Shown here: in pieces, positions 35,277 to 61,900 of the stretch
How positions within the stretch are numbered: the first letter of the stretch is position 1
How the letters are laid out: the number at the start of each line of letters is the position of its first letter
Assembly (NCBI GenBank): GCA_964187785.1
Contig: OZ076409.1
Coordinates: 64,232,001-64,296,000 of the forward strand
Reading direction: 5' to 3'
Length of the DNA: 64,000 bases
Origin: Amphiscolops sp. MND2022
Taxonomy: Eukaryota
Notes under the pieces: model-generated
The model's input: only the letters and a program-made list of their open reading frames with translations
Databases searched by the model: none
What the model was told of the DNA's origin: nothing
Made by a program: the position numbers and the translations under genes

Positions 35277-36953
35277 TGTCGCAGGCTCCCGCCTGCGATG
35301 GGAACTGGTATCAGGTTGCCCCTGATACCTGCAACAATTTACCCGTCCCCCCAGGAGTGCTGCCGATCTAAGTCGCAAAGACCATCAGTACTTGAAAACA
35401 ATTATTCATTGGACGATTTGAACTCATTATTAGCTCAAACTTTTATCTATGTACAATTACGGACCTTAAGTCCATTCTCCCTAGTAAGACTTATAATCGG
35501 AGTTAGACTCTCAATGTAGTATATTTGTGTGAAATCTAGTAATTTTGCTATCTTATGGATCTATCATATTCAATGCATGTATTTAGTCATGTAAACCAGT
35601 AGTCAATTATAGTGAATGTAATCAATTGCGTGCAATTAGAATTAACAAAGCAGCTATATAGTTGGAAGGAATCGCGTTCGAATTGTCCCCCGCGTTGGTC
35701 AGTTCGGACGCGTTGTCCGCCAAATTATTCAACCAATCAGCTGTGAGCACTAGTGCTTTCTTTCACTCATTCGCCGCCATTCACGTCTACACGTATTAGT
35801 GTGGACCACCAGTCCAAGTGCTATACTCTATTTACATTAGCATGTTATATAAACAAATAGAATTCTCTGGAGCGGTGTTATGTTGCTAATTAGACATAAA
35901 AGGCGTACCGCCATTTAGCCCCCCCCACATTAGCTTTCACTCCTTTTCGTAGAATTAAGCTATTTTTAGAGTGATGTCACTGTTCTAATAATATCCCCAA
36001 GGTGATTTTGCCCGCATTTGATGCTATTAATAGACCAAACCCTAGAAAACGTCACTATGACGTCAGGTCCAGTAATCTAGTTTTATCCCTGTGATGATCA
36101 TAATTTTGCGTGTCATGAGGCGCTGATTATAAATAGTGGGGACCCGAGGTTTCCAGGAACACAATCGACAATCTGTTTGACCGCGAATACACACACAATC
36201 CATTCCAAGTGAACTCTCAACTCTATTCAATCTTAACGCATAGTCAATTTGCCATTTCTTGCTACTCTACTTAACTATCAATCATTCACTTGTTTCCTCA
36301 TTCCTTTAATATACTGTAGAAGCTCTAATATACTCTTAGTTGAGCTTAAATCTCTTCAATGCCTTCTACCAGAAAACAAAGAGCTAAAGAGAGACGCTCT
36401 AGGCAAATAGACATAATGTCTGATGCTGAGAACTTAGATGTAATGCTTGGATCATATCCGAGAAATGACTTAGAAAATGATTTTGATAGAAACGATGAAA
36501 TGGACCTAGAGTCTAATAGGACAAGAGCTGACTTAGCACAAAATAGTGAGGATTTTAGGTCACTTTTGAACTCCAACAGTAGAGAGAACAGTGAATCAAC
36601 TGTTGAAACTATGAGGCTTGTTAACTCTGAGGTCACTAAGAAAATCGACGAACTGAGGAGAGAACTTAATTCTCAGTTAGTAGATGCTATAAACTCAGCG
36701 ATCACAGAAAAGGTATTGCCTGATATCAGAAATATGGTGACCGGCCAAAGCTCATTGTTTCGGGAAGAAGTGGACCACAGGTCCAGAGGACTAAACAGGA
36801 CCTCCGAAGAATTAGGTAGTAGAAACGCTTGGAAAAGCAATTCAAAGCCTACTTTGGCTTCCAGTAGTCGACGAGACTACTTCAGGAGAAACTCAGATGT
36901 TTCTCAGTTCAGTGATGATGATCACGAAGAAATGATGACCAATAATCATGACA
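35277..36953 (+). repeat. E2 5' LTR (1677 bp)
   Basis: TGTCGCAGG..CATGACA, near-identical to 49870-51548. Confidence 0.97.
36058..36134 (+). promoter_or_regulatory. E2 LTR promoter: CRE-like TGACGTCA and TATA box
   Basis: TGACGTCA at 36058-36065 and TATAAAT at 36128-36134. The same pair occurs in the E3 LTR. Confidence 0.55.
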
Positions 36954-38072
36954 TGGTGACAGGAGCCAAACCTACCCCTCGTACGGTTCCTGAATTCCTT
37001 ACTGGACGGCCCATGCATTCCCGAGAAGAAACACACAATTCCAATTCCCCACGAAATCAATCCTCAGAAAATGTCCCTCCCGTCCAAGAGACAAACGTCA
37101 ACGATGGCTCAGACCCCATTAGGCGTCTCGCAGATGTGCTGGTTGGAATGAACAGCAAATCATCAGCGCAGACACTGATGGTAAGACCCGTCACCACCAC
37201 CACACTGACGTTTGATGGCAAATCGGAGAAAATTGAACTCTTCGAAGATCTTTTCCATACTATGGTAAAGATGCAACCCGAAATGACGGAAACCATGAAA
37301 ATCAACCACTTCCACTCTCTGTTGAGGAAAAACGCCCTACAAACTTTCCGCAACATCAGTACCGCTAATAGGCAGACTCTGGAAGATGTACTGGCAGTCT
37401 TTCGACGCAAGTACGTCAAACCAGAATCTCAGGCAACAGCCAAACACAAATGGCACAAACTAGTGTTTGACCCAAATACTATGAAACTGCCTGATTTCCT
37501 TGAAGAATTAAATCAGGGTGCGGAAAAGGCATTTGGAGAACACGCCCAGGCCATGATGGACAGCCTATTGTACGCCAAATTGCCTCCAAAACTCAAACGG
37601 TCTGTCAATATGGCTAGGCTTGAAAATGCGTCGTATGAGGAAATAGTCACTCATCTAGAACGCGAGCTTGAACTTAACGGACTTGAGGGAGGTGACGACA
37701 TTCCAGTACCTACAATGTCCACTGCCCCCACAGCAACACGACCGGGAACTGGCCTCCTTTCATCGGGTATTGACCCCAATATCACTTTAATTATTGCAAA
37801 AAACCCGGCCATGTCAAGGAAGACTGCCGAAAACTCAAACGAAACGAGGAACAAAGGCGCAACGAAGGGCAGGATACTAAAAAGAATATCCCAAATGTCC
37901 AACTTGCGGCAAAACAAATCACCCGGCGGAACGTTGTTGGAAAGGCGCCGGAGCCCACCTCAAGCCCAAAAACCTCAAACTGGAGGACGCCAAACAGGAC
38001 GAAGCGCCCCCCGGACAAAATGAGACCAAGGACAAACAGTTCACCTCTATATTAAAAAACTCAAAAAACTAG
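36359..38072 (+). CDS. gag: E2 gag, starting inside the 5' LTR
   Basis: 554-aa ORF from ATG 36359 with capsid-like LTFDGKSEKIELFEDLF..LRKNALQTF. Two zinc knuckles (NYCKKPGHVKEDC, CPTCGKTNHPAERC) appear after 1-nt frameshifts near 37790 and 37880. Confidence 0.9.
36954..36967 (+). other. E2 primer-binding site (tRNA not assigned)
   Basis: TGGTGACAGGAGCC immediately after the LTR CA. The identical 14-mer follows the E3 LTR. Confidence 0.85.
38063..38069 (+). promoter_or_regulatory. Putative -1 ribosomal frameshift heptamer A AAA AAC
   Basis: Directly before the gag TAG, with pol in the -1 frame. The same arrangement occurs in E3 at 53895-53901. Confidence 0.7.
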
Positions 38073-41000
38073 ATTTGCCACGACTCCAATTTAATGAAAA
38101 ACTTAGAGTTAGACAATATATAATCTCTGACGCTGCTAATGTATTTTATATTGAATATTATTCTTCTTTAAAGGGAACCTCATCGGCTGACTGGCAGCAG
38201 CAAATGAGAATTACCCCTACTCAATTTTGCACTTCGGACCACAGGTCCGACAGACTTGACTTGACTACGGACAATATCCGACCTATTCCATCAATCCCTG
38301 ACTATAACCCCTATTACATCGATCCGGACTATGGCATTGCCCCTACTGGGATGTACAAATCTACAACCAACACGAATTGCATTTCTATGCCAACTTTAAC
38401 AAACAACAAGCCGAAATCGAACCTGACTGTCCTGTGGCAGACGGGGCTCTCAACAATATTCTGACTACGGCTCTGGTAGACCAGTGGCAATTGGTACCCA
38501 ATTCATTTGCTCTACCACCACCACAGGAGCCCGAAACAGAATTCTACACATTTGGACCACAAGTCTCTTTGGCGTTAGCCGTCGAGGCACGATTTGTCAA
38601 CACTCTGGTCACCAGAAATGGCGAACCAGATTATGTACCGCTGACAACCAACCTTGGACTGAAATATAAACGGCGTATGCTCTACTTTCCAATGGATTTT
38701 GGCGAACTTACATTAGATGGCCTTGTAGACACGGGAGCCCTATCTAGCGCGATCCCTGAAGCTGATCTACGTAAAATCCGATTATTAGCCCCTCAGTCAA
38801 TTGTCAAAGAGGGCCCAGCACCCAACTTCCAAATAATGGTAGCCAATGGGCAGCTGGAAACTCCAAAGAGCACCGTCGAACTGAAATTTGAGGTCGGCGA
38901 TATAGAATTTCACGAAATTTTTATTGTAATGGAGAAACTCACAAGCCCTTTGATTGGTCTTTCGTTCTTGCAACGAAACAACACCATATTGGACATGAGA
39001 CAGGGAGTCCTAAATTTCCCGTTCTTCTCCATGCAATTAAAGACGGCGGATCACAAGTACACCAACGTCATGGAGCCTATCTGTACGCAGGAGGACATAA
39101 TCATCCCTCCCAACGATAGACACCTAGCCACGTTAACTTCGCAGATGTACGACGATACCACCGTTACTGGTATATTACAACCAAGCAACGCCCTCACTGA
39201 GGATGGGGACATCATCTTTTGTGCGGCATTGGTCACATTGACCTCAGGTCAAGTTGAAATTCATCTGAATAACTTCACTGACCACCCTTATACTCTTAAG
39301 AGAGGTTCGCATATCGCTAATTTCTCTGTCATGACCCCAGGACAGATGAAGTACGTCAAACCTGTTGACCCGGTGACCACATGGCACCTTTTGCAGGACA
39401 ATCCTGAAAATGCTGCCTTTTATGTTAGCAGCTTGATTAAATCTTCAAAACCAGAAGATTTTCGTGAGAACTATTGGTTTCCTACCCCGGAAGACCCTGG
39501 GGATCCACAACACCATACGCCTATACAAAAGCGTATTCTGACTGAGCTCTTGACTTTACAAGAGCTAGAGAAGCTTAATCCTCAGGATGACCCTGAGTCC
39601 AGACGACAATTCTTGACCAACTTTGATTGGACTGACTCTATGCTGCAACCAGACGAAATTGTTCGCATTGAAAACTTGCTAGTCGAATTTCACGATATAT
39701 TCGCTAGACACCGATTCGACATAGGCATGAACGAGGATTTCAAGGTCAAATTGACCCCAAAAGATGATTCCCCGGCCTATAGTCAAAGTCTACCAACGCC
39801 TATTAACCTCAAGGAAGACATCCTTGTGGAATTGGCACTGTTACAACGATATGGGATTATAACAACTCTCCCATTTTCCAAATACGCTAGCCCAATCTTT
39901 GCCCAAAAGAAACCTAACGGCAAATTGAGACTGCAAGTCGATCTCCGTAAGATTAACAACCTAATTTCGGATGATTATATCAACAATAATCACCCCGTCA
40001 GTACACTGACCGATGCTGCCCAACATATGGCTGGCAAAAGGCTATTTTGCAAGTTGGACTGCTCGCAAGCATACCACTGCTTGCAAATGGCGGACCAACG
40101 GTCGATTGAAATGTTGGCGTTCAATTTCGCCAGCAGGACATTTGCTTACCGCAGGTTGGCACAGGGACTCAGCCGTGCTTTATCAGCCTTTTCATGCTTT
40201 ATGCGAGAATATCTCGACAAAGTAATCAAAGCCGACCAATGTGCACAATATGTCGACGATATTGGCATTGCTGCCAATGATTCCGAACAGCTCATAAAGA
40301 ACCTGCGGGCCACTTTCCAATGCATCCGCGAGGCAGGATTGAAGCTCACAATGCACAAATGTCATTTTGGTGCGACAGAAATTGACTTTTTGGGTCGAAC
40401 GATCACGCCAGTCGGCGTACGTCCACAGCGACCACGAGTCCAAAATTTCCTTGAAAATACGAAATTTCCGAAATCAAAGAAAGCATTGCAGCGATACCTG
40501 GGATTTCTTAACTATTATCGCAACTATATTCCCAGGCTTTCAGAAAAATTAACACCGTTCTTTAAATTATTAAAGAATGACGAAAAAGTCCTGGTAACAC
40601 CGGACCTATTGGAGAAATTTACCGATATCAACAAAGCACTTGACCGCTGTTGTGAATTAGCACTTAAACAGCCACTACCGAATAAACAATTAGCTCTCAT
40701 GACGGACGCCAGCTTTATGGCCGCTGGATACGCAGTCCTAATTGAAGACGATCCGCAAGAGAAATACACTTCAACGAGAAAAGCGTTTGCTCCGGTAGCC
40801 TACGGGTCAAAGACCTTTAGTCCCGCACAATTGAAAATGTCCATTTATGCAAAAGAATTCTTAGCCATATTCTTTGCGTTCAAGGAATTTGGACATATCT
40901 TTTGGGGGACGCCAAAACCGGTAATTATACTGACCGATAACAAATCCGTCACGCGTTTTTTTCAAACAAAGATAATACCACCAACGTTGTGGAACGCGTG

Positions 41001-43106
41001 TGATTACGTCATTCAATTCAACTTCACAATAGCACACATTCCCGGTAAAAACAACACAGCTGCTGATTATTTATCGCGTTTAGAAGTTTCACCAAAAGAG
41101 AAATTAATCCTTCGCATTAGAGAAGATATTCCCACTACGCCAATTGAACTTCATGCCCAATCCGCGGGAATTAACGAAGAAGAACAAATCTTCTATACTG
41201 ACGATGATGATGAGACGGAAGAACAAATCTGGCAAAGGAAGAAAGAATCACGAGACAACCCTTCCAACCAATTGCCGGATATTTCTTTTGAAAAATTTAC
41301 CACTCATCACAGCAATTACCAAGAATTATCCATTTGTCAAAAATTAGCCAATATCAACACTGTGGCCATAGAGCAAAACAACGACGTCATTCTACAACAA
41401 CCTAAACTCAAAATCCAAAAAGAAGAATATTCTGAAACGATCTTGATACAAGACACAAGATATCAGCACTAGCTACGTCAGTTAGACCGGATGTCCATCC
41501 AAGATGAAATCATCACCAGACAGTATTATGACGAAACAGGAAACGTCAAATACAATCAAGTGCTCTTACCAAAACATCTGGTAAATGAATTGCTCGAATC
41601 CCTCCACGGAAAGGCAAATAGACACCGGGCATTGCAAAAATGTTACAAGAAATTCGTTCCAAATATTATTACCCCGGAATAGCGAAACTAGTCCGCAAGA
41701 GGGTTAATGGATGTGAAATTTGCATCAAAGATAAAAGAATTCAAAACGAGTTAATAACTCCTGAGCTCCTTAATTTGCCAGAATGGACCTTGGGTCCAGA
41801 AGACGCAATGCAAATAGACCTCTTGCCGAACCTCCCGCCGAGCGGAGGCTACGAAAATATTATTACTGCCATGGACGTTTTTTCGCGTTACCTTTTTGCT
41901 TACCCAGTTACTGACGCCTCAGCTGCAAACACTGCCAAGGTCATTATCGACATCATGACCAAGCACACTTATTTGCCGACGACTTTGATTACCGATAAAG
42001 GATCAGCCTTCACATCAAAGTTAGTAGCTGAAATAGCGCAAATTCTGGGCATTCAAATTAAATGTGCGACGACAAAACACCCTCAGACCATAGGGAAACT
42101 GGAAAAAACACATGCCAGTCTCAAGACTAATCTCAAAATGGCCTCAGGGGAGTACAGACGTCAGTGGCACAAGTACTTGCCGTTAGCAGTCCTAAATTAC
42201 AACACGTCTTACCACTCGACGTTGGGCTGTGAGCCTTCAAGGATATTTCATGGCCGTATACCATACAACATCCTAGACCACAATTTGGGGCTTAATCCAA
42301 ACCCGCAGGTCCTTCCGACCACGGACTTTGCTGAGGAAGTTCAACGCAGATCGCAGATTTTGGTCGATGCAACAAAGAAAAACATCATGCAGTCTTATTT
42401 GAAGTACAAAGACTATTACGACCGAAAGGCCAAAGCCGCACCTTTGAAAATCAATGATTATTGCTTTATTTTGCAACCTATAGCTGACCATCAAGGATCC
42501 AAAATCCCTTTTCGAGAATTTCGTTGGATCGACCCTTACATTATTGAGAAAGTTTTACCCAACGACAATTATATAGTGCGCAAGCTCAGTTCCAACAAGA
42601 CGCAAATTTTACATAGAATACGTCTTCGAAAATATGAGCCTAATACTGACTTGCAGGACGATCGCCCTGAAGGGAATTTGCAGCCTGACGATGAAATTGT
42701 CGTTCCTCAAGACGATCTCTACGTAATCACGTGGGAAACGAACTTTGGAGACTTGCAGTCTGGTCGACGTAATGCGACCTACGAGCAATCAACCGAACGA
42801 GCAGAAAATACGAACGATGCAGCTGCCGATTTTGAGCAGCCAGACCAAATACTGACCGATGTGGATCTGAGGTCCACTAGACGTGATGCGACGGAGGAAA
42901 CTCTTCCTGAGCGAACTGCAACCGATTCTGAAGATGAAACAATTCCCGGTGATGAAACATCATCAGGGGGGAGCGATACTATCGTGCCCGAAGTATCAAA
43001 AAGCGAAAATGACGAAAGGATTCAAGACAATGAAAGCCCTAGGGGAGGGAAATATAACCTTCGCCCAAATCCTACCCCCAATTACTCAGGAGAATACAGA
43101 TACTAG
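38063..43106 (+). CDS. pol: E2 pol: PR, dUTPase-like spacer, RT, RNase H, integrase (frameshifts near 38400 and 41630)
   Basis: LVDTGALSS; KLDCSQAY and QYVDDIGI; LMTDASF, KEFLA and TDNKS; QIDLL..TDKGSAF..GKLEKTH; KIPFREFRWIDPY. Confidence 0.96.
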
Positions 43107-43300
43107 TCAGAACATTCAATTGTTACATCCCATCTTTTCTCTTTGCCCATGAGGACATGTATTTTTACTGGGACCGCTCTGACTTTATTTTTTTATGCTG
43201 CAATTAATAGACTGTCGACAAAGCGACTTAGAGGAAGAACAAAGAAATAAATACAAATGCAGTTTATAGTTTAAAGTTTACATATGTACTGTGCGTACAA

Positions 43301-46300
43301 TCAGTCTCTGCTGCTACATTGGCGCAGGCTCTTAGCAGACTGGGCCACTTCGGAATCCGACAAAAGGTGCGTCGGACGCACATTCTTCTTCGAGTACTGT
43401 AAGGTACTGGGGGACTGCTGGACGATAACGGAACTGGAAGTACCCGCCTTGCTGGCTTTGCTCTGAAGTCTACGATCAGGATCCAACTTCGACAGAATCT
43501 CCGTCCTCCCGAAATTATCCAAACCCGACCATGGGTCATACGTGTCGCCAAGCGCGGTGCGACCGAAAGTGGACTCCATTTCGAGGAATTCGGAGATTGA
43601 GGCATCGCTTGTCACTGACTCGACTGAATTGGCCACTTGGCTGAAGTATGATTGTACCGGCAGTACAATGTCCACTAGCTTGCTGGTGGGATCCTCCGTG
43701 TTGACTGAGCTAAATCTGACTGTTGGAAGACTTCGAAAGGGCTCGTCAATGCACAGGCAGGCCAACCTGAAGCAACTCAGCAGCAAAGGACGTGTGGGCA
43801 AGGTCGTTTGCTCCATTAGGAAGTCGATTGTGTCCTTGATCAATAAAGTTGGCTGATCAAACTCCGCGAATTTGACGCGCAGTTCGTCGACGAAGGACAA
43901 GTACTCTTCCTGCGCTGGAGCCTCTTGTTCCTGGGAGAAATACCCACGGAGACGGAAGATGGTAAATAGCTGACTGAAACACTTTGTGGCCAATGAGAGA
44001 GGCAGCTTTAGGAGGATTTCCAAGTCAAAGCTAGCTAAGCCTTGGGCAATGTTCGTGGTAAAGTTAAAGTGACCACGCGTCTCCTTGAATAAGTGCGTCA
44101 CATAACTTCTCGCCAAACGTCCAAACTCCTCCTTGGCTTTCTCCTTCAATTCGTCGATTGACGTCTTCTCTCCCTTCTGTTCGTGCTGGTCAATCTCAGC
44201 TTTCAGCTTGCAAGCTTGGTGAAGCTTCACTCCAAACTTAGTCCTGTTGAGGAACACTGTGACTTTGAGGGCAGGGGCAGTTGTCGTGTCCAGATCCAGA
44301 ATGCTCGCTATGTCCTCCTCGACAGGCAAAGCAGTAGGAAGAACAACGCGCTTGCCCAACTTGCGGAGGTAGAGACAAAGCTGACGAAAAGAGTAGAAGG
44401 CCCTGTCACGTCGGCCACTGAGACTGAGGGAGAAATTGGTGGTATCTGAAACAGTAAACAAGTCATGAGGACGACCTACGCCATGAAGACCTACGGTCCA
44501 CAGAAGCAACGCCAACTAAAAGGGATCCAAGTTGGAACAGTCAAGCTTAGATTGGAAATTTAAAGAAGTCTCAGCGCAGTTCAAGTCAAATGATACCTAT
44601 AGGGTTACTGCGAAGCAATGTGAAGACTAAAGCACAAGAAAACTTAAAGTACTAACAGTCACGGACGAGCTTTCCAAAGAACTCTAGTTTGCAAGGGAAG
44701 AAATCATCGTGAATGATGGAGCGCTCAAAGTTCTGTGGCTGAAAGAAAACAGATGTTATTGAGATTTGCTCTACCAGTGACCACGAGGACAGCAGTCGCA
44801 ACTCGACCTACCTGATTACGGACTCCTTGCATTTGCTGCTGTGGTGAATGGTCAGAGAGATAGTTGATAACAGCCTTCCAGTTAGCCATCAACTCCTGGC
44901 ACAATTTCGGGACTGTCGACACGTCGAGCTTGCAAGTCTTTATGTCCTAAACGAAAACCCTATTTTACACCAAAACAAGTTTTATGCAATACACGGAGAA
45001 TAGACCGAGAGTCTTACGTTTGTCAATTCAGGGGTAAAGAGGGTCCATTCCATCTCGAGGCTTCCACTCAAGCAAACAACCAGATATTGCAGTACCGAGA
45101 AGAAGTCGATGCGCCCGAACACGGAGAAACTGTCCTTGTGCATCAACTTCTTGATTGCAATCTCGTCGAAGATGGTCGGACGCTGTACCCCATGCTTGGT
45201 GAGTGGTGACCGATCTAATAACTGCACTAGACCATGTGTAGCGCCGGAGCAACACACCAGATCAGCTTCAGTGGAGATCGCAGCTAGGAGGGTAGTCACA
45301 AGGTTTACCTCAGCCGACGTCCGTCCACATGTCCTACCGGTCCGTCGTAGGTAGACACGACACAATCTATCACCCTTCCAGAACCTGACGTGGAGCAGAA
45401 GGAAAACCCCTTGAGGTTCGAACTCCACAGCAAATTGTCCAGAGGTCATGATATCGTTGCCGATATTTGGGACGATCTGAGTGAACAGATGATGGAACAA
45501 CACCTTAAAAACAACTTTGGATTAGACCATACGAACACAACTGTCAACCCAGGCCTACAGTTCAAAACCTGAACAACAACTCTTGGAGTCCAGTCAATTC
45601 TATACAATACGGTGATGGGACTAGAAGTCATTTAGACATGAAGGGACTACTTACCGAGAGTCTTGTCGTGCTCCAATCGATGTCGCTGAAAATGGCCTGG
45701 TGGTTCACGGCCGCGCCGACTTGCTGCCAGAGACTTCGAAGGACCTGAATATCTCCAGACAGAGGCAAGAAACGTCCTAGTACGGAGATCTGCATTTTGG
45801 CGCGATTCTGAGGGGAAGGAGCCATGTAGTCTGCACCTGCCATCGCCTCGTCGTAGAGCGGCAACTTCTCCCCGATGTCCACCAGCTCGCTATTGATGAA
45901 AAGCGGCAACTCCAGTTGGAGCTGATAGTTAGAGAGCACTTGGCCGTTTCGTCCTCTGACTTGATATCTACGCCGTTTGGTGAGGGGATCTTCAATGGTG
46001 AGGTACTCGTACCTCCAGCGCTGGTCTTTGCGCAAGTGTCGTTCAGTTGCGAAATGTCGCAAGATTTCCTTCGGGCCTTTAGCTCGTATCGACACGTTGC
46101 ACTTGCAAATCTGGCAGTAGATCTTATGCTTATTCCACTGGGGTCGACTGGCCCCGACACGAACGTTCTGGTCCACGGCATGGACTCAAAGTGCTTCTCC
46201 TTCATGACATGGTCTCGGCCCATCCGTCTTCTAGGTCGCGCTGGACCTCGGGCTCTTGTTCGGGCTGAAGTGTGCTTCCTGGAGTGGCGTTGTTCAGTGG

Positions 46301-47677
46301 TGGCCCCATGTCTGATAGTAGCTAGAGTTTGCATTCCAGGACTAAAGGCTACGGGTGACTGAGGATCGGACTCGAAGTCCACTTGCCTCCTGTTACCAGC
46401 GGTTGGAGGGGCAGGCATCGCCACACTTGACTGGAAGTCGGGTTGGGACTCCGCCTCACTAGTCATCCCTGGACTAGCGTCGCCTCTTCGAGTGTCATAG
46501 GTGATGACAGAATCGCTACCAATATCTGTGTCAGTATCTGGACCTGACGTCGAGGCAGCACGCCTTCGAGGAGTTGCTTTCACGGGACTGCTCAAATTCA
46601 GTCTGCTTGCCCGCTCTACCACGCTGTTCAGCATCTCAAAGGATGCTCGGGCGCTCTCGTCTGCCACAATCCTGAGGATGCTGGTAATTTGATCTTGATT
46701 GAGAGCAATGACAGGATGCCCAGGATCAAGGCAGATAGGGTTTACTTCAGTGAAGCACTGTTTGATTATGACCCTGCTGGTACCTGACAGGGAGGAGGTC
46801 CTGTACGAGGTGGTAAATCAGGAATGCTAGAATCATGGCTGGATTCATCGCGGCAAGGAATATCACGGACCTTTGTGGGGCTATAAAGTGCTTGGCCCAA
46901 AGTAGACCGAACCATGGATCCGGTGTCGGTCTCCATCCCAAAGCAGGAATATTCATCGGTGTGGTACCGGTAGTCCATTGGTCCACGGTTGACTTGTGGC
47001 TCACCAGAGCCAGAGCCTTCAGCGCCTCGGCCTTCTCCAGGCGCAACTAGTTCACGAGAGCCAGACTGTACTTGGGCAGGTGTCTGTTCTGTAAACCCGA
47101 CGTTCTCAAAGTGGACTTGCCTTTCTGCACTGGTACCATCAGCTCCGAAGTCAGGTTTGGATGTGCTGAGGGCTTGCTCATCTATTTCGCGAAAGGTCAA
47201 AGGACTCTGTTCCACGGTAGCAGCATTGTTTGGTTCTACTGATGAATCAGTCTTGTCCAGGAAAACAACTATAGGGATGCTTTCTGACGGCTGGACTTCA
47301 GGGATCATCTCGTTCAGTGCGGGAGTTACAGCAACTAACTCGCTCACACTCTGCTTTACTTCAGCAGGAATCTCATCTGCGGGACTAGCAGGAATCTCAT
47401 CTGCGGGACCAGCAGGATCACGTTCAGCGCTCTCCAGCAATTCAGCTGTGCGTTTGATGTACGCATCACAGCTCTCCGAATCAGTGTTAGACGACAGTTC
47501 GATTACAGACCTCTTGTCTGCTGCGACTTCTGTGACTTCAGGCTCTGGAGCCTGTTCAAATGATGGCAGATCTACTTCCATCTCTTTAGCAACATTTTGC
47601 TGCGGTTGGCCGTCCATTTCTTTGCCTAAACGGAAAGAAATAAATTTTCGCGATCCACTTCCGCTAAAGAAATCCAT
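43301..47677 (-). CDS. E2 antisense 5-exon gene; BED-like zinc finger plus probable inactive hAT-transposase fold
   Basis: Exons 47677-45655 (two 1-nt frameshifts), 45503-45018, 44946-44812, 44738-44657 and 44445-43301. The GT-AG introns give a continuous frame, and all four positions are shared with E3. Confidence 0.85.
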
Positions 47678-49145
47678 CTTATCGCGTTTGAAAGACTTTC
47701 GAAAGCAAGTTCATTATTTGTTCATACCTATGATTGAATATTTCACGATGGAGGAAGTGAAAATTAGTCAATGGGAAGCCCTGATCAAGCTCAAAATTGA
47801 CAAAATTATCTAAAAGAACCAACCTGATGTTTATCCAACTGGAAGACAGAATTCGAAAAGCGTGATGTAGCTGACTGGAGGTATATGGCCTGCCTGAACT
47901 GTGAATTTGGCTCGGGGAAGAAGCAGGTGAAGGAAAATTGTCAGCTGAAACGAACTGTTGTGAGGGCACCCAATGTCAATTAGATCACTAGTCCAATTAA
48001 AGGAGATTAAAGAAATGGACAGACTGAGTTGAGAGAGCTGCCGAGGAGTTGATTCTAGAGATGTAGTATGCACCTGCACTGTGCCAAGGATAGGAGATAA
48101 ATCTGCAAGATGGGGAATTCTGAGCTGGGGATGTATGCTCAACTTGTTCAGCTGGTCGATCAAAGGACGATTAGACCAGTGGTCCAAGAAACGAAATTAC
48201 AAGCAAATATTGCTAAAGGGACACTCCAGCAAGAGTATTCCAAGGAAACTTGACGATCTAATCTGGAACTGTGGAATAGAATTAGAGTGACGAATTCAAA
48301 ATGTAACAATGATGTAGTAATCAATTCAAAAGATTGCAATGAAGACTGTGGAAATTAGAAGACTGGTTTACTATGCTTTATGACAATTCGACTACATGTA
48401 TTACTTACCTATTCCTACTTCTTACCATCATACTTGACTGTCAAGACAGATAATTACTTGATCAATTCTAGCATTAAATTTATCTACATCAAAGGACGTC
48501 GTGGCTACATGCAATTAACCAACCATTATTATTGTTATTATCTCTTTTAACTACCTATGCATCATGACCTTTGGTGTTACGGAAACTGCCAGTGATGTAC
48601 ACTTTTGGTCATTTCTTTCACACTTCCTTGTTCCTTTAGTTAGAGTTACCATCGTTACCATTATTTGATTTCATTAATATGATCTATTTTATTATTTTCA
48701 TTCAAAATTCATTCAGAATTTTCAGTTATTTATCAAAGCGCTCTGATTGGTCAGTTGGTATCAGCTAGCCGCGGAGACCGCCGGTCTTTGATGACACTCC
48801 ACTGATGTTGATGAGCGGTGGTAAACAATCTCACCGCTCGTTAACACCTCTTCAGCAGTTACTATAACCACTTGAGACTGGACTCAAGGGCTTGTCAACT
48901 TTACGAGCCGCTCAATATCAAAATGATATTAAGAAAGAAATCTACTAAATAAGGAAATGTTTTGAATATGAGGGAAGCGGCGGGGAAATTTTCCCTAACT
49001 GAATTTCCCGCGAATTTTCAACCCTATGACCTAAGGTCGGCTGGTCTATCGCAGCCATTCTTCTGAATCTCAACTTACAAATCAGCAGCTCACACTTATT
49101 CTCAAAATAGCTAAGAAAATCTTGCTGAAAAGATTTCGATCAGAA

Positions 49146-49964
49146 ATGTCTCTGCAATTTGCCGTTGACGACTTGATTAGCCCTTTGGTCAGTTTGTCTT
49201 ACCTGTCCTCAGAGGAGGAAGACATGGAAGTGGATGATCCACAACCAGCCGTAGACGAGGAGGGGTACGACAGCGACATTGAAGTCCTGGCTTGCTTCAG
49301 CGAGTCACATTCTGTGAAGCCTATGGGTGTGGCTGGACGCACAATGACAACTGAAATCTACATCGAGGATGACGATCTAACACTGGTTGAAGAACTCTAC
49401 GGGCGAGCATGCAAGTTGGACTCAGAGCCAACCGATGATCTAGTCAACTTAGTACTGGGCAATGGACCCTCCAAGCATAGTATGATCCCTGTAGGCGAGA
49501 AACCGATAGCCAGGTGTGCTCAAATGCAACCAATTCCCGACACCCCACAGTCTCCACCTGCCCATGAGAGAGGCCCCACCTCCACCTTCGACAACACCCA
49601 GTGGGCTAACTTTCAAACTGCCTACGAGCCCGAGCATGCCCACATAACGGGGATAGCTGTAAGCGCAAGCGGTGTCTGCGGAACCTCAAATTTCGTGGCC
49701 AGAGGAGACTGCGTGGTGTGTGGGAAAGACTTTGGGTCTATCAAAGAGGAAGTGACATTAGACTACCTGGAGCGGACTCACTTATCCGGCGAACCTTATC
49801 TAACACGAGTAAGGAGGAGGAATGAGGCAGGCATGGCCGCCGGCTCATTTCTTCTCGTACCGGGGGGAGTGTCGCAGGCTCCCGCCTGCGATGGGAACTG
49901 GTATCAGGTTGCCCCTGATACCTGCAACAATTTACCCGTCCCCCCAGGAGTGCTGCCGATCTAA
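49146..49964 (+). CDS. E2 3' accessory ORF (272 aa from ATG), acidic with CxxC motif, reading through the PPT into the 3' LTR
   Basis: Intact ORF with CVVCGKDF. The last ~31 codons lie in the LTR, and the motif SQAxACDGNxY is conserved at the start of the E3 LTR. Confidence 0.75.
   Translation: MSLQFAVDDLISPLVSLSYLSSEEEDMEVDDPQPAVDEEGYDSDIEVLACFSESHSVKPMGVAGRTMTTEIYIEDDDLTLVEELYGRACKLDSEPTDDLVNLVLGNGPSKHSMIPVGEKPIARCAQMQPIPDTPQSPPAHERGPTSTFDNTQWANFQTAYEPEHAHITGIAVSASGVCGTSNFVARGDCVVCGKDFGSIKEEVTLDYLERTHLSGEPYLTRVRRRNEAGMAAGSFLLVPGGVSQAPACDGNWYQVAPDTCNNLPVPPGVLPI
49862..49869 (+). other. E2 polypurine tract
   Basis: GGGGGGAG directly before the 3' LTR TG. Confidence 0.85.
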
Positions 49965-51548
49965 GTCGCAAAGACCATCAGTACTTGAAAACAATTATTC
50001 ATTGGGCGATTTGAACTCATTATTAGCTCAAACTTTTATCTATGTACAATTACGGACCTTAAGTCCATTCTCCCTAGTAAGACTTATAATCGGAGTTAGA
50101 CTCTCAATGTAGTATATTTGTGTGAAATCTAGTAATTTTGCTATCTTATGGATCTATCATATTCAATGCATGTATTTAGTCATGTAAACCAGTAGTCAAT
50201 TATAGTGAATGTAATCAATTGCGTGCAATTAGAATTAACAAAGCAGCTATATAGTTGGAAGGAATCGCGTTCGAATTGTCCCCCGCGTTGGTCAGTTCGG
50301 ACGCGTTGTCCGCCAAATTATTCAACCAATCAGCTGTGAGCACTAGTGCTTTCTTTCACTCATTCGCCGCCATTCACGTCTACACGTATTAGTGTGGACC
50401 ACCAGTCCAAGTGCTATACTCTATTTACATTAGCATGTTATATAAACAAATAGAATTCTCTGGAGCGGTGTTATGTTGCTAATTAGACATAAAAGGCGTA
50501 CCGCCATTTAGCCCCCCCCACATTAGCTTTCACTCCTTTTCGTAGAATTAAGCTATTTTTAGAGTGATGTCACTGTTCTAATAATATCCCCAAGGTGATT
50601 TTGCCCGCATTTGATGCTATTAATAGACCAAACCCTAGAAAACGTCACTATGACGTCAGGTCCAGTAATCTAATTTTATCCCTGTGATGATCATAATTTT
50701 GCGTGTCATGAGGCGCTGATTATAAATAGTGGGGACCCGAGGTTTCCAGGAACACAATCGACAATCTGTTTGACCGCGAATATACACACACAATCCATTC
50801 CAAGTGAACTCTCAACTCTATTCAATCTTGACGCATAGTCAATTTGCCATTTCTTGCTACTCTACTTAACTATCAATCATTCACTTGTTTCCTCATTCCT
50901 TTAATATACTGTAGAAGCTCTAATATACTCTTAGTTGAGCTTAAATCTCTTCAATGCCTTCTACCAGAAAACAAAGAGCTAAAGAGAGACGCTCTAGGCA
51001 AATAGACATAATGTCTGATGCTGAGAACTTAGATGTAATGCTTGGATCATATCCGAGAAATGACTTAGAAAATGATTTTGATAGAAACGATGAAATGGAC
51101 CTAGAGTCTAATAGGACAAGAGCTGACTTAGCACAAAATAGTGAGGATTTTAGGTCACTTTTGAACTCCAACAGTAGAGAGAACAGTGAATCAACTGTTG
51201 AAACTATGAGGCTTGTTAACTCTGAGGTCACTAAGAAAATCGACGAACTGAGGAGAGAACTTAATTCTCAGTTAGTAGATGCTATAAACTCAGCGATCAC
51301 AGAAAAGGTATTGCCTGATATCAGAAATATGGTGACCGGCCAAAACTCAGTGTTTCGGGAAGAAGTGGACCACAGGTCCAGAGGACTAAACAGGACCTCC
51401 GAAGAATTAGGTAGTAGAAACGCTTGGAAAAGCAATTCAAAGCCTACTTTGGCTTCCAGTAGTCGACGAGACTACTTCAGGAGAAACTCAGATGTTTCTC
51501 AGTTCAGTGATGATGATCACGAAGAAATGATGACCAATAATCATGACA
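49870..51548 (+). repeat. E2 3' LTR (1679 bp), including a second copy of the Gag N-terminal ORF (50954-51616)
   Basis: Near-identical to the 5' LTR and followed by the TSD GCACC. Confidence 0.97.
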
Positions 51549-51556
51549 GCACCGGC

Positions 51557-52768
51557 TGTCCCAGGCGGCCGCCTGCGATGGGAATGTCTACGCTATCCCA
51601 CAAAATGCAATCATAACAAACACAAAACTGTCAAGCTTGCCTCTTCTCTAAGAAGAAGGTTCTTGCAAACCAAAACTATGAAAACTGTTGAGTCATGTAA
51701 CTTCTGTATAATGCCATTCATTGCCTCATCGAGACTGTAAAATACAAGTAAAATGGTTAATAATCATTAGTACTCAGTGTCATTTATGATGTCCTTATGA
51801 CATCAGTGGACAATACCAATACTTTCATTAGTGCAGTCTATATTGACTAATACTGCTCCCATGCGTGCATGAAAATAACGTTTACATTACGTACGCATGT
51901 GCGAAGTGAAGAAATAGCGATAACCCTAAATCAGAGCTATGTAAACACGGTGTTACTATATATGGATAGATGACCTGACGTCACATCCACTTTGATGATG
52001 CTATAAATAGAATTACTTGTAGTGTGTCATGCAAGGTGCTATTTTTAGAAGGTGACTTGACCTAAATTTGAGAGTCATGTAACTATGAGTATATATGGTA
52101 TGATCCCTGAGAGGGGACACAATCCTATTAGATTGCATTAAAAGTCACAACCAGATCTTGAGTATCAATTCAATTTACCAGTTATCATGTTTTCCTCTGA
52201 GAATGCCATCGACGAGGAGCAAAAAGGCAAAAACGAGAAGGTTGAGAGAAGCAGACATAATGTCGGATCTAGAGGACATGGATGTTATGCTGGGTTGCGG
52301 TGAGTATAATCCTTTTGAAAGAGAGATAGATCAAATAACCGGTTTCTCAAACACGCTAGATAGCGAAGAATCAAGGGAAAATATCTCAGCAAGAGGATGC
52401 TCTTCCCAAGAGAATGAAATCAGAAACATGCCTGAAAACAGGGATGATAATAATTTAGCGAGACATATAGACGTTCTAACGAACGAGGTTAATCTAACAA
52501 TTTCGAGAGAAATGGGTAGTTTGTTGAATGTAGTTAATTCCCAAATAGAGATCGCCATTAGCATGGCTTTATCTGAAAGGGTAAATCCCCAAATTCAAAA
52601 CGTCATTGAGAATGTGCTGGCTAGACAGTCTGAGCGTGTCGCGACAATGACCAGAAGACCTCACAACTCAGGTATTTGATGCGCAGAACTGTGACGGAGA
52701 TAAAGCGAGTAACAGGGATTTTTAATCTCATCAAAATTTAACAGAACTCCATGAGGAGAGTCCTTACA
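51557..52768 (+). repeat. E3 5' LTR (inferred, about 1.2 kb)
   Basis: Left end inferred by similarity to the E2 LTR start; right end is TTACA before TGGTGACAGGAGCC. TGACGTCA at 51976 and TATAAAT at 52002. No second copy in the window. Confidence 0.75.
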
Positions 52769-58977: not shown

Positions 58978-61900
58978 TCAGCAATACCCGAGCGACATCA
59001 GACTTGCAGACACTCCAAAACAAGTACGTCTTTTAACGCGGCGAGTAGGGCAAAAGGGTAACAGCTCCGAACGAGCTGCTCTAGCGGGCCTAACCTGCGC
59101 GCGTCGGGGACTCTCTTTCTCTTTGAGCAAAGTCGTGTGGCTGGTCCTCAGTCGCTTATGAATTGTGCTCCGGCCGAAGTATTCCACACTATGCCAGGGA
59201 TCATAACTGGCATCCAATCCGGTATGGCCGAAATCAATACTCAATCGGAGGTACTCCTCCAAAGACTGATCACTAGCACAGACTGTGGTAAATGAGCAAG
59301 GAAAGACTCTGGTAATACCACATCGGTAACACGGCAACACGGTACATCTGTGCGAACACTTCCAAAATGAACAACAGGTTAAGAGGGGGCCTTGTCAGTG
59401 AGACATAAACAACTTAAGCGGAACAGATGGTAGATATGCTTCGGCTCCTTGAGGGCGGGTAACTTGGACCTGAAATCCACCATGTCGTGAAATGCGTCGG
59501 GTCTAGAAATCAGAGATACCTTGGTCCCACGAAGATGACTCAGGACACTTATATATTCATCTCTGCATTCCTGCTCACTGGTGCCCTGGACCCACCCCCT
59601 CAATTTGAATCCTCGGTAAAGGTCGCTGAAACATCGAGTAGCGAAATACATTGGCATCTCCGTCAAGACAGCGGGATCGAAACAAGCCACCCCCCAACAT
59701 TGTTGGTAGTCATAGTGACATGTTTGCGAACCCCTTCGTTGAGGAAGAGATAGTAATTACGGGCAGAATTGCAAAACTTAGCCCGCAATTTAGTTACAAG
59801 GTCATCAAGGATTGAGCGGACCAGCTTCTTGTTACTAAGCTCTGCTGCCTCTTTCCGCCGTAACGCAGCATCCACTTTGCTAGTGAGATTGAGTCTATGT
59901 AGGAAGTCCTCATGCAACAACGCTTCCTGCCCCTCTGTATGAAGAGAAAGTAAGCCATTCCAGTCGACATCCTCCGGAACACAACGGTCTATCAAAAACC
60001 GCACGCACAACTTGTGGAGGAAGCGAGATGGTTGCCCATAAATATAGAATCCGGCATTCCCCATGTTGCTAAGTGAACGCTCGAAGCAAGTGACGACTAA
60101 AGCACAAGCACCACATATAAAACAAAGAACTCATGAAATTACTTCAATCCATAGGAAAATACAGTAGACGCAAAAAACTTATAGACACACAGAACATCGC
60201 AGACTTTAAACATGTAAAGATAAGCCGAACACGATGGATATTGTGGAAAGCGAATATTGTAAACTTACAGTCGTGCACGATCCTAGAGGACCGCTCGAGC
60301 TTCATGGTGAACAAGCCGTCCATCAGGATCATCCAGGCCGAGGTTTGCGGCTAAGGGAAAAAGAGTACCACGTTTAATAAACACTAATTCAGAATAAACA
60401 CTAAAATCAGATTGACACTGACTTTTTTTTCTAATTCCAGCAATTTCTTGGTAGCGGGTAGTTTTTCAGAGATATTCGCTCACTTGAGTCCAATGGGCCA
60501 ACAGTTCATGGCACACTAAGGGCAAAGTCACAAGCTCCAATTTACAAGCAATGATGGCCTCAAAAGTCAATGAACTTAAAATACGCACATGGAGGGATAA
60601 GGTAAGTAGAAACTGAAAAATACCTTGGTTAACTCGGGACACTCCAAAGTCCAACCCAGAAATAAACTGCCCCCAAGGGAAACCACGACCAAGGGAAACC
60701 ACGACGTTTTGGAGGACAGAAAAGAGATCCACCCTTTCAAACACACTGCGACTGTCCTTGTTAATAATGGACTGGAGATTGACAGTTTCAAAGCGGAATG
60801 GAGACTGAAGGGTATGCTGGAAAAACCCAGAGTCATCGACGGTTTGGATGAAGTCACTGGGACAACCAGAGACACCAACCAGCTGAGGGCGGGTAGAAAC
60901 AGCTGAGAGGATCCTTGATAACGATCCCATTTCTCCTGCTAAAGGGGGACTCTGTAAGCCATATCTGCATAGCAAAGCTTTGACAAGGCTGTCGTCCTTC
61001 CAGAAGCGAATAAATTTGTGTTTAAATCGTCCCACTTTTTCGAACTCCAGTGCGAACTGACCGTTAGTGAGAAGCTGCTGTCCCAAGTCCTTCAGCGACA
61101 AATGAAGAAATGGTGGAAGATATCCTAATAAACACAAAAGGGTGAACTGAGGAGGATATTCAATGAAGGGAATGCAGTTAAGGCATTAACAAAACAAAGA
61201 GAATGCGTAAACCTACGCCGATTTGAAAATAATTAAAGCAGGACTTACCGTCATTTTCTCCTCACTCCAGTCAAAGTCACTGAACATGCTTTGATGTTTA
61301 GTGAAGGTCCCAACATTCGTCCAAATGCCTCGCAGGGTTGTCAAGTCCCCAGAAGTCTTCAAATATTCACCAAATAGGCATAGTTGGGAGTAACTACGAC
61401 TTCTGTTGGAAGTGGAGCTGTCTCGTGCTGCCTTGAAATCCTGGTAAAAAGGCAGTTTCTCACCTAACTCAACCAACTTTTCGTCGATGACTTTGGGTAT
61501 TTCAAGTTCCTATTCAAACTTGTCAATCAGATTCCCCTTTTTGTCCCGAACAAAATGAGTAACGATCTTGCTCACTGGATCTGTCCTTACGAGGTGGGTG
61601 TAACGCCACTTCTGGTCCTTACGGAATCGTTCCGTGGAAGAGTAGTGACGTTTGACCTCCGCTGCACCTTTTCCATCAATGGAAACTTTTCTACAACAAA
61701 TTTGGCAGTAAAAGCATTGGGGATTGTCTAGGGGATTCATGGATCCGGGCAGAAATACCTGAGACTTTTCTATCTTCCGAAATTACGTCTCTTTGATTAT
61801 CTTGTCGGGCCGGCTCATTCGTTGTCGTTTTAGGGGGGATCACTGACCCCCACAGTTCTGGTAGATCTCTTACATCCGATAGGTTGTGAGGTTTCAGCTA

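Follow-up and report, generated by a model that had tools for sequence, protein, structure and literature searches.

Genes of reverse-transcribing elements are expected to be intron-poor, and the locus described here raises the question of how a multi-exon gene could be kept by such an element. The locus lies in a 64,000-nt stretch of contig OZ076409.1 from Amphiscolops sp. MND2022 (assembly GCA_964187785.1, positions 64,232,001 to 64,296,000), hereafter the window, whose numbering is used for all coordinates; searches of the genome covered 1.07 Gb. The window contains E2, a complete long terminal repeat (LTR) retrotransposon of 16,272 bp (35277-51548), in which 6.8 kb separate the end of pol (43106) from the 3′ LTR and hold open reading frames (ORFs) on the minus strand. 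An earlier note on this DNA had proposed that these ORFs form one antisense gene with four introns. Our analysis bears out an intron-bearing antisense gene that belongs to the LTR element: it was found in every related copy and lineage examined, it is always convergent with pol, and it is under purifying selection. Judged from these comparisons, it is very likely a real, selected, element-borne gene with conserved introns.

A genome search returned at least 48 copies, 30 of which were examined in two subfamilies. Members of subfamily A (n = 10), which includes the window copy, are 95-98.6% identical to the window copy; subfamily B (n = 20) shares 77% identity with A, and its own copies are more than 99% identical to one another. 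The GT and AG ends of all four introns stand where the earlier note had placed them (Table 1), and the phases that it gave, 0, 0, 0 and 1, follow from the exon lengths of intact sister copies (2022 or 1995, 486, 135 and 82 nt). Intron lengths hardly differ between A and B (151/152, 71/72, 73 and 211 nt), and the GT and AG ends are kept in nearly all 30 copies. At intron 2, the donor is GC (GCAAGA) in six of the ten A copies (L005-L010), and the AG is lost in one copy, L002. GC-AG is a known minor class of splice sites, and the GC-donor copies may still be able to splice this intron. Because the frame-restoring GT-AG boundaries are conserved in position and phase, we regard the interruptions as spliceosomal introns.

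The claim of a single frame of about 1,250-1,300 aa stands for the family (1,289 aa in L008 and 1,280 aa in subfamily B) but not for the window copy, in which only 789 codons are open. With the introns removed, the window copy reads without interruption from 46176 as far as the stop at 43301, and exon 1 (47677-45655) is spread over three frames (ORFs 47677-46766, 46667-45777 and 46176-45628). Relative to L008, the window exon 1 carries two 1-nt length differences, near 46791 and 46140, neither of which is shared with another copy. The gene model is thus right for the family, of which the window copy is a decayed member. Exon 1 encodes a poorly conserved N-terminal region of ~480 aa, followed by a CCHH zinc finger (~46116-46036) and a conserved stretch that runs to intron 1. 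A tandem duplication within exon 1 (47362-47417; 24 nt, 2.3 copies) encodes a repeated PAGPADEIPA motif, and subfamily B is without 24 nt inside this repeat (alignment columns 260-283, ~47417-47394), one of the two in-frame exon indels.

The full spliced frame is open in 18 of the 20 young B copies and in one of the ten older A copies, L008. Frameshifts and premature stops in the ten A copies are each confined to one copy, while in-frame length variants are common to several. This pattern suggests that the gene was intact in the copies that transposed and decayed only after insertion. The ratio of nonsynonymous to synonymous divergence (dN/dS) on the spliced coding sequence, of which the earlier note had said that a value near 1 would refute its reading, was about 0.08 between subfamilies A and B. 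For L008 (A) and L011 (B), dN was 0.10, dS 1.36 (a saturated value) and protein identity 81%, with 164, 127 and 547 differences at the three codon positions in turn. The two copies differ by exon indels of 24 and 3 nt and by six intron indels of 1 nt each, and A and B are 81-84% identical in exons 2-5 and 66-72% identical in the introns. These comparisons indicate that purifying selection acts on the antisense gene. The initiator context (A at -3, G at +4) and an N-terminal MDFF..G...RKFI..RL motif are likewise conserved, from subfamily A to the distant relative L031. A genome search with exon 5 listed 7,647 first-look candidates, of which 108 were scored; every one of these matched, at identities from 100% down to 60%, and most were open. 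Codon-position, indel and cross-lineage conservation, as read from the alignments, exclude a chance origin of the frame.

The gene structure extends well beyond these subfamilies. E3, a diverged element next to E2 in the window, carries a degraded homologue: exon 2 is frameshifted, and exon 3 is 136 nt long and includes a stop. As the earlier note had reported, E3 has introns at the same four codon positions, and exon 4 is 82 nt in both elements; the introns of E3 are GT-AG (61248-61125, 60623-60559, 60422-60351 and 60268-60097). Further relatives were found on contigs from ERZ1742291 (L031) and ERZ25074608 (L032-L034), with the junctions in L031, L032 and L033 placed by eye. Exon 4 is exactly 82 nt in six lineages (A, B, E3, L031, L032 and L033) from three assemblies, at protein identities down to ~31%. 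Introns 2-4 have the same positions and phases in E3, L031, L032 and L033, which are 31-47% identical to E2 in exon 5, and intron 1 has the same position in E3, L031 and L033. In L032, a GTAAGT donor stands at the same place and no in-frame AG acceptor could be placed; this copy may be degraded or mis-assembled at intron 1. Four database ORFs, P0208-P0211, read through intron 1 as a short in-frame insert starting with 'VS' (GTnAGn). No intron-less version of the gene was seen among the copies and lineages examined.

We then compared the antisense gene with the pol of the element that carries it. Across assemblies, the gene kept company with gypsy elements, a point that the earlier note had raised: in L031-L034 it is convergent with a gypsy pol, across a spacer of 150-270 nt, and the L033 contig holds a whole element with the same domain order, including a DUF1759 gag. 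Identity to E2 in integrase, reverse transcriptase-RNase H and exon 5, respectively, was 90%, 91.5% and 47% for L033; 84%, 86% and 45% for L034; 77%, 77% and 31% for L032; 70%, 74% and 31% for E3; and 81%, 69% and 33% for L031. Subfamily B was 96% identical in integrase and 89% in exon 5. Identities of pol and of the antisense gene thus drop together, with the antisense gene diverging far faster. These values fit a long co-descent of the two genes with rapid evolution of the antisense protein, and modules may occasionally have been exchanged.

Homologues in public protein collections have so far gone without a name. In a library of 1.84 billion representatives, exon 5 matched 438 homologues, each an unnamed ORF fragment of at most 420 aa from a European Nucleotide Archive (ENA) assembly. 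The homologues in the collections as a whole (L031-L034, P0001-P0400) are all unnamed ORF fragments from ENA 'metagenome' assemblies, on contigs of up to 1.2 Mb, which evidently represent eukaryotic host DNA. The gene was absent from all annotated proteomes in the public protein collections searched, presumably hidden from them by repeat masking.

The retention of introns through retrotransposition, which the earlier note had attributed to the antisense orientation, is seen in the young copies. The 40-nt exon 4/intron 4 boundary of subfamily B has 34 genomic matches, 33 of them exact, over at least 12 chromosomes, whereas the spliced junctions 3 and 4 of B have no genomic match at up to 3 mismatches; this count of 34 to 0 tells neither for nor against splicing itself. 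Since B copies are more than 99% alike, they are recent products of retrotransposition, and all 34 kept the boundary. The mechanism would follow from the rules of the spliceosome: on the packaged sense RNA the introns read CT...AC, should therefore be unspliceable, and would be reverse-transcribed into each new insertion. The behaviour of antisense introns in retrotransposition indicator cassettes provides an established basis for such survival.

We utilized AlphaFold models and structure searches to characterize the product. The predicted protein of ~1,280-1,290 aa consists of the fast-evolving N-terminus, the CCHH finger, an RNase-H-like domain and an all-helical C-terminus, a layout that matches a hAT transposase. 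The finger, C-x2-C-x16-H-x5-H, does not vary among 21 sequences, and its model has a beta-beta-alpha fold; in Pfam it gave weak C2H2/zinc-ribbon matches and no zf-BED match. For the finger together with exon 2, the model was built from P0208, which reads through a 26-residue intron, and its core of beta-beta-beta-alpha-beta-alpha, at a predicted local distance difference test (pLDDT) value of ~80, has RNase-H topology. Its matches among AlphaFold DB clusters were ZMYM1-like, DUF4371, ZBED4/6/8, DUF659, BED-type and 'transposase' proteins (E ~1e-4). In a shape search of the ESM Atlas, DUF4371/FAM200-ZBED5_RNase-like, ZNF862-like and ZBED proteins filled 8 of 10 rows, with template modelling (TM) scores of 0.29-0.37. 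In the PDB, the Hermes transposase (residues 133-376) was matched with a Z-score of 6.6 among generic RNase-H-fold proteins, and the neighbours there also included retroviral integrases and Argonaute PIWI domains.

Exon 5 was modelled as an all-alpha domain (mean pLDDT 79). In AlphaFold DB it resembled hAT C-terminal dimerisation and ZNF862-like proteins (E 4e-5 to 0.2, TM 0.4-0.5), and its alignment to Hermes residues 368-609 (Z 4.7) was the longest in the list. The two halves of the protein thus map collinearly onto one hAT transposase. Foldseek against the PDB and an ESM Atlas shape search with exon 5 returned nothing useful; a protein language-model atlas offered weak leads to hAT/FAM200 proteins for exon 5, and for the middle part it offered none. 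The weight of the hAT link lies in the agreement of two libraries and of both halves, each score being weak alone. On these models, the antisense protein probably descends from a hAT transposase.

These results can be joined into one explanation, which we hold with good confidence as a whole: the gene is an accessory gene of the retrotransposon, with a hAT-like product. A lineage of Ty3/gypsy-type elements of ~16 kb has this five-exon gene in antisense orientation, in the long interval that separates pol from the 3′ LTR. The antisense transcript would start from a promoter of its own, 5′ of the ATG (47677), be spliced by the host spliceosome and end in the short spacer facing the end of pol. 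The most likely history is that a hAT transposon inserted backwards into an ancestral element and lost its ends while its transposase was kept. The product might then act as a nuclear DNA-binding factor for the element, for example in LTR regulation, integration guidance or counter-silencing, and not as a DNA-moving enzyme.

Several observations weigh against this explanation. The model of the finger and exon 2 has a poor overall pLDDT of 55, and the structural scores are weak, with TM-scores of 0.2-0.47 and Z-scores under the tool's own caution line. Pfam gave no family match for any exon or for 109 family members, and PF05699 (hAT C-terminal dimerisation) had no sequence match in 53 members. 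Searches of the PDB with the protein, by phmmer and by profile, were empty; a profile search of 5.8 billion proteins recovered only unnamed members of the same family, and HMMER against the 1.84 billion representatives and two word-indexed searches recovered only unnamed ORF fragments from ENA assemblies. In strand beta-1, the acidic residue is a conserved E where D is canonical, and no residue could be assigned to the second and third catalytic positions. On the side of expression, four sequencing runs from one sample cover the locus as unspliced contigs of up to 164 kb with no joints, and these runs behave as DNA; a search of RNA-Seq libraries listed no run for this locus. No antisense promoter was identified in the 2.2 kb upstream of the ATG; over the first 1.5 kb of this region, A and B align with few gaps at 75% identity. 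In A copies, the minus strand has an AATAAA at 43189, which is 112 nt beyond the stop; it was rejected as a family-wide poly(A) signal, since its place is shifted in B and the spacers of L031-L034 lack it.

What the protein does is a separate matter. A putative regulatory or targeting role without cut-and-paste activity is a tentative reading, to which we give a little less than an even chance. It is improbable that the protein is still an active transposase or nuclease of the hAT type, giving the element, or other DNA, a second, DNA-cutting mobility or a cleavage activity. In its favour, the RNase-H-like core and several acidic residues, E235, E273, D305, D341 and E367 (P0208 numbering), are conserved across the family, and purifying selection spans the whole catalytic-like region. 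Against this, we found no terminal inverted repeats around the gene, the beta-1 acidic residue is E, and hAT motifs are not recognised by Pfam. A hAT DNA transposon as the mobile unit was likewise rejected: what moves is the LTR element, with its LTRs and a 5-bp target duplication in place of the 8-bp duplication of hAT elements. With E at the beta-1 position, a catalytically inactive protein is plausible.

A different possibility is that the antisense RNA, and not the protein, matters, by pairing with the sense genomic RNA and feeding self-regulation through small RNAs, a role that has been proposed for TART and for certain plant elements. The 3′ part of the genomic RNA would be complementary to the whole of the antisense transcript, and antisense RNAs with introns and no ORF have been published for TART (PMC1636488). 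The exons also show an excess of synonymous change. Between A and B (loci L008, L011, L001 and L012 compared over 43301-47677), 0.53 of the fourfold-degenerate sites of the antisense exons differ (241/456), compared with 0.31 of the sites in the four introns (158/504), 0.25 in the 1.5 kb upstream of the ATG and 0.27 of the fourfold-degenerate sites of integrase (43/157). Synonymous divergence in the exons is thus roughly double that of each neutral proxy in the element (P ~1e-11 and 1e-7).

Within subfamily A, private variants are alike at fourfold-degenerate and intron sites (0.074 and 0.085), whereas variants present in at least two A copies are 2.7-fold commoner at fourfold-degenerate sites (0.069 vs 0.026; Fisher P 8e-4). 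Because the excess is confined to shared variants, it arises in the transposing lineage and not after insertion. An ADAR-like signature was rejected, as transitions and transversions are both raised, and no overlapping sense-strand ORF that could cause the excess was found over the region. Either the non-exon sequence is all constrained, or the exons gain change through the replication cycle or through selection. As an account of the gene, a role of the RNA alone is quite improbable, because the dN/dS of ~0.08, the indels in multiples of 3, the conserved initiator and N-terminus, and the full 1,280-codon frame kept by 18 of 20 young copies demand translation. An RNA role could coexist with the protein without being the whole story. 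A bolder version of the accessory-gene explanation, possible but doubtful, would make the hAT-derived gene an essential trans-acting factor of these gypsy elements, for example a sequence-specific DNA binder in integration or LTR activation, with the synonymous excess reflecting an ongoing conflict over the mature antisense mRNA, such as small-RNA escape or duplex-dependent mutation.

That the gene is a decaying passenger, a functionless nested hAT transposon whose splice sites were kept by recency alone, is very improbable: the window copy and E3 are both broken, which counts in its favour, but a passenger would have a dN/dS near 1, the breaks are never common to two copies, and the reading frame, all four intron positions and the 82-nt exon 4 persist in lineages whose proteins are 31-47% identical.

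Antisense ORFs in Gypsy lineages are already known, as the earlier note had stated, from plants and fungi (PMC7264820, PMC11963269). Such an ORF in the interval between pol and the 3′ LTR (aORF-3R) is carried by plant Tat/Retand elements (maize Grande gene23, rice RIRE2 and Silene Retand) and by the fungal Boty; its function is described as unknown and its origin as unresolved, with a regulatory or nuclear role suggested (PMC7264820, PMC11963269). The gene described here has the same position and orientation, a long interval between pol and the 3′ LTR, and an ORF in most copies and in related families. The plant and fungal ORFs, in contrast, are described as single, and introns go unmentioned in the 2020 review and the 2025 Retand survey (PMC7264820, PMC11963269). 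Plant proteins carry TRP28 (PF04195), whereas neither the exons nor the 109 members here have a Pfam match. A nested-transposon origin of the plant antisense ORFs was found unsupported in the 2020 review (PMC7264820). The present gene is much longer (1,280 aa), with four conserved introns and a hAT-like fold, and a nested DNA transposon is, on the models, the best reading of its origin, unlike in plants.

HBZ of human T-cell leukemia virus type 1 (HTLV-1) is a small basic leucine zipper protein made from a spliced antisense mRNA with one intron, whose first exon lies in the 3′ LTR. HBZ and other retroviral antisense genes are likewise encoded on the minus strand of an element that replicates by reverse transcription, and are expressed from a separate promoter near its 3′ end (summarised in part in PMC11963269). 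The present gene differs in its four introns, its 1,280 aa, its transposase-like product and its wholly internal position, and there is no kinship of sequence or fold. The antisense RNAs of Drosophila TART have multiple introns of similar sizes and spacing across diverged subfamilies (PMC1636488), and in both cases it is the antisense strand of a retrotransposon that carries several spliceosomal introns. TART, however, is a non-LTR element with no significant ORF in its spliced antisense RNAs (PMC1636488), whereas the exons here encode a strongly constrained protein.

With hAT transposases and their derivatives (Hermes; ZBED, ZMYM1, ZNF862, FAM200, GTF2IRD2; DUF4371), the predicted protein appears to share a CCHH finger, an RNase-H-like core and a helical region in that order, and nearly all of its structural neighbours, in two libraries, belong to this group. 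It differs in having no detectable sequence similarity to them, in missing the first D, in the absence here of inverted repeats and an 8-bp duplication, and in having been captured, on this reading, by a retrotransposon and not by a host. In the his3AI and neoAI reporters, a marker lies antisense to the element and its intron lies in the sense orientation of the element, to be lost on transposition. An intron antisense to the element transcript, by the same logic, stays in the genomic RNA. In the present gene, the introns point the same way as the gene itself and are therefore kept, which makes it a natural mirror image of the reporter design.

In the open-access literature, we found no conserved multi-intron coding gene and no hAT-like gene described inside an LTR retrotransposon, in line with the earlier note, which knew of no such multi-intron antisense case. 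Antisense accessory ORFs are known; the conserved, multi-intron, transposase-like version is new. Carriage backwards would allow a multi-exon gene to be kept indefinitely, a principle used so far mainly in engineered reporters. A nested DNA transposon becomes a candidate source of antisense accessory genes, with a foldable and testable protein, and if this protein serves the retrotransposon, one transposon class would have domesticated another, unlike the host domestication of ZBED, ZMYM and GTF2IRD2. The family also marks a blind spot of annotation, with thousands of first-look matches in this genome and at least 685 cluster representatives in public assemblies and no name or Pfam domain.

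The features of E2, of its antisense gene and of the E3 homologue are collected in Table 1.

Table 1. Features of the retrotransposon E2, its antisense gene and the homologue in E3 (window coordinates).
Feature	Position	Strand	Details
5′ LTR of E2	35277-36953	+	99.58% match to 49870-51548
Primer binding site-like sequence	36954		TGGTGACAGG, directly 3′ of the 5′ LTR
gag ORF	36359-38023	+	554 aa; Pfam DUF1759, E 4e-6
pol part 1 (aspartic protease, reverse transcriptase, RNase H)	38377-41472	+	Pfam RVT_1 2e-23, RT_RNaseH 1e-15, gag-asp_proteas 2e-7
pol part 2 (integrase)	41640-43106	+	Pfam rve 3.5e-12; Integrase_H2C2 truncated at ORF start
Spacer between convergent stops of pol and antisense gene	43107-43300		~195 nt
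Antisense exon 5	43301-44445	-	1,145 nt; stop 43303-43301; all-alpha C-terminal domain (predicted)
Antisense intron 4	44446-44656	-	211 nt; GTTAGT...TTTCAG; phase 1
Antisense exon 4	44657-44738	-	82 nt
Antisense intron 3	44739-44811	-	73 nt; GTAGGT...TTTCAG; phase 0
Antisense exon 3	44812-44946	-	135 nt
Antisense intron 2	44947-45017	-	71 nt; GTAAGA...GTTTAG; phase 0
Antisense exon 2	45018-45503	-	486 nt; core of the RNase-H-like domain (predicted)
Antisense intron 1	45504-45654	-	151 nt; GTAAGT...TTTAAG; phase 0; GT/AG in 30/30 genomic copies
Antisense exon 1	45655-47677	-	ATG 47677-47675; one open exon of 665-674 codons in L008 and subfamily B
Region from antisense ATG to 3′ LTR	47678-49869	-	2.2 kb; presumed antisense promoter and 5′ untranslated region
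Purine tract		 	GGGGGGAG, adjoins the 3′ LTR of E2
3′ LTR of E2	49870-51548	+	paired with 35277-36953
Degraded homologous antisense gene of E3	matches ~59068-61746	-	tblastn 31-39% identity to E2 exons; E3 pol 70-74% identical

The LTR pair of E2 (1,679 bp, 99.58% identical) has TGTC...GACA ends and is flanked on both sides by a 5-bp target-site duplication, GCACC. Pfam matches on the plus strand run in the order gag, protease, RVT_1, RT-RNase H and integrase, which is the Ty3/gypsy order; with these LTR ends and the short target-site duplication, E2 is a Ty3/gypsy-type LTR retrotransposon. Its pol is broken, being split between 41472 and 41640, with integrase in a different frame from part 1. 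Between protease and reverse transcriptase, a weak dUTPase-like match (residues 235-319 of the 38377-41472 ORF; E 0.0019) falls under the Pfam cut-off.

The gag ATG (36359) lies inside the 5′ LTR, ~230 nt 3′ of a TATA-like box near 36130, and ~198 gag codons are encoded by the LTR (36359-36953). The same ORF start recurs in the 3′ LTR (50954-51548; ORF 50954-51616). Between the E2 insertion and the 5′ LTR of the diverged E3, which follows downstream, there are 8 bp; that LTR starts with TGTCCCAGGCGGCC at ~51557, and the two elements stand head to tail with no common LTR.

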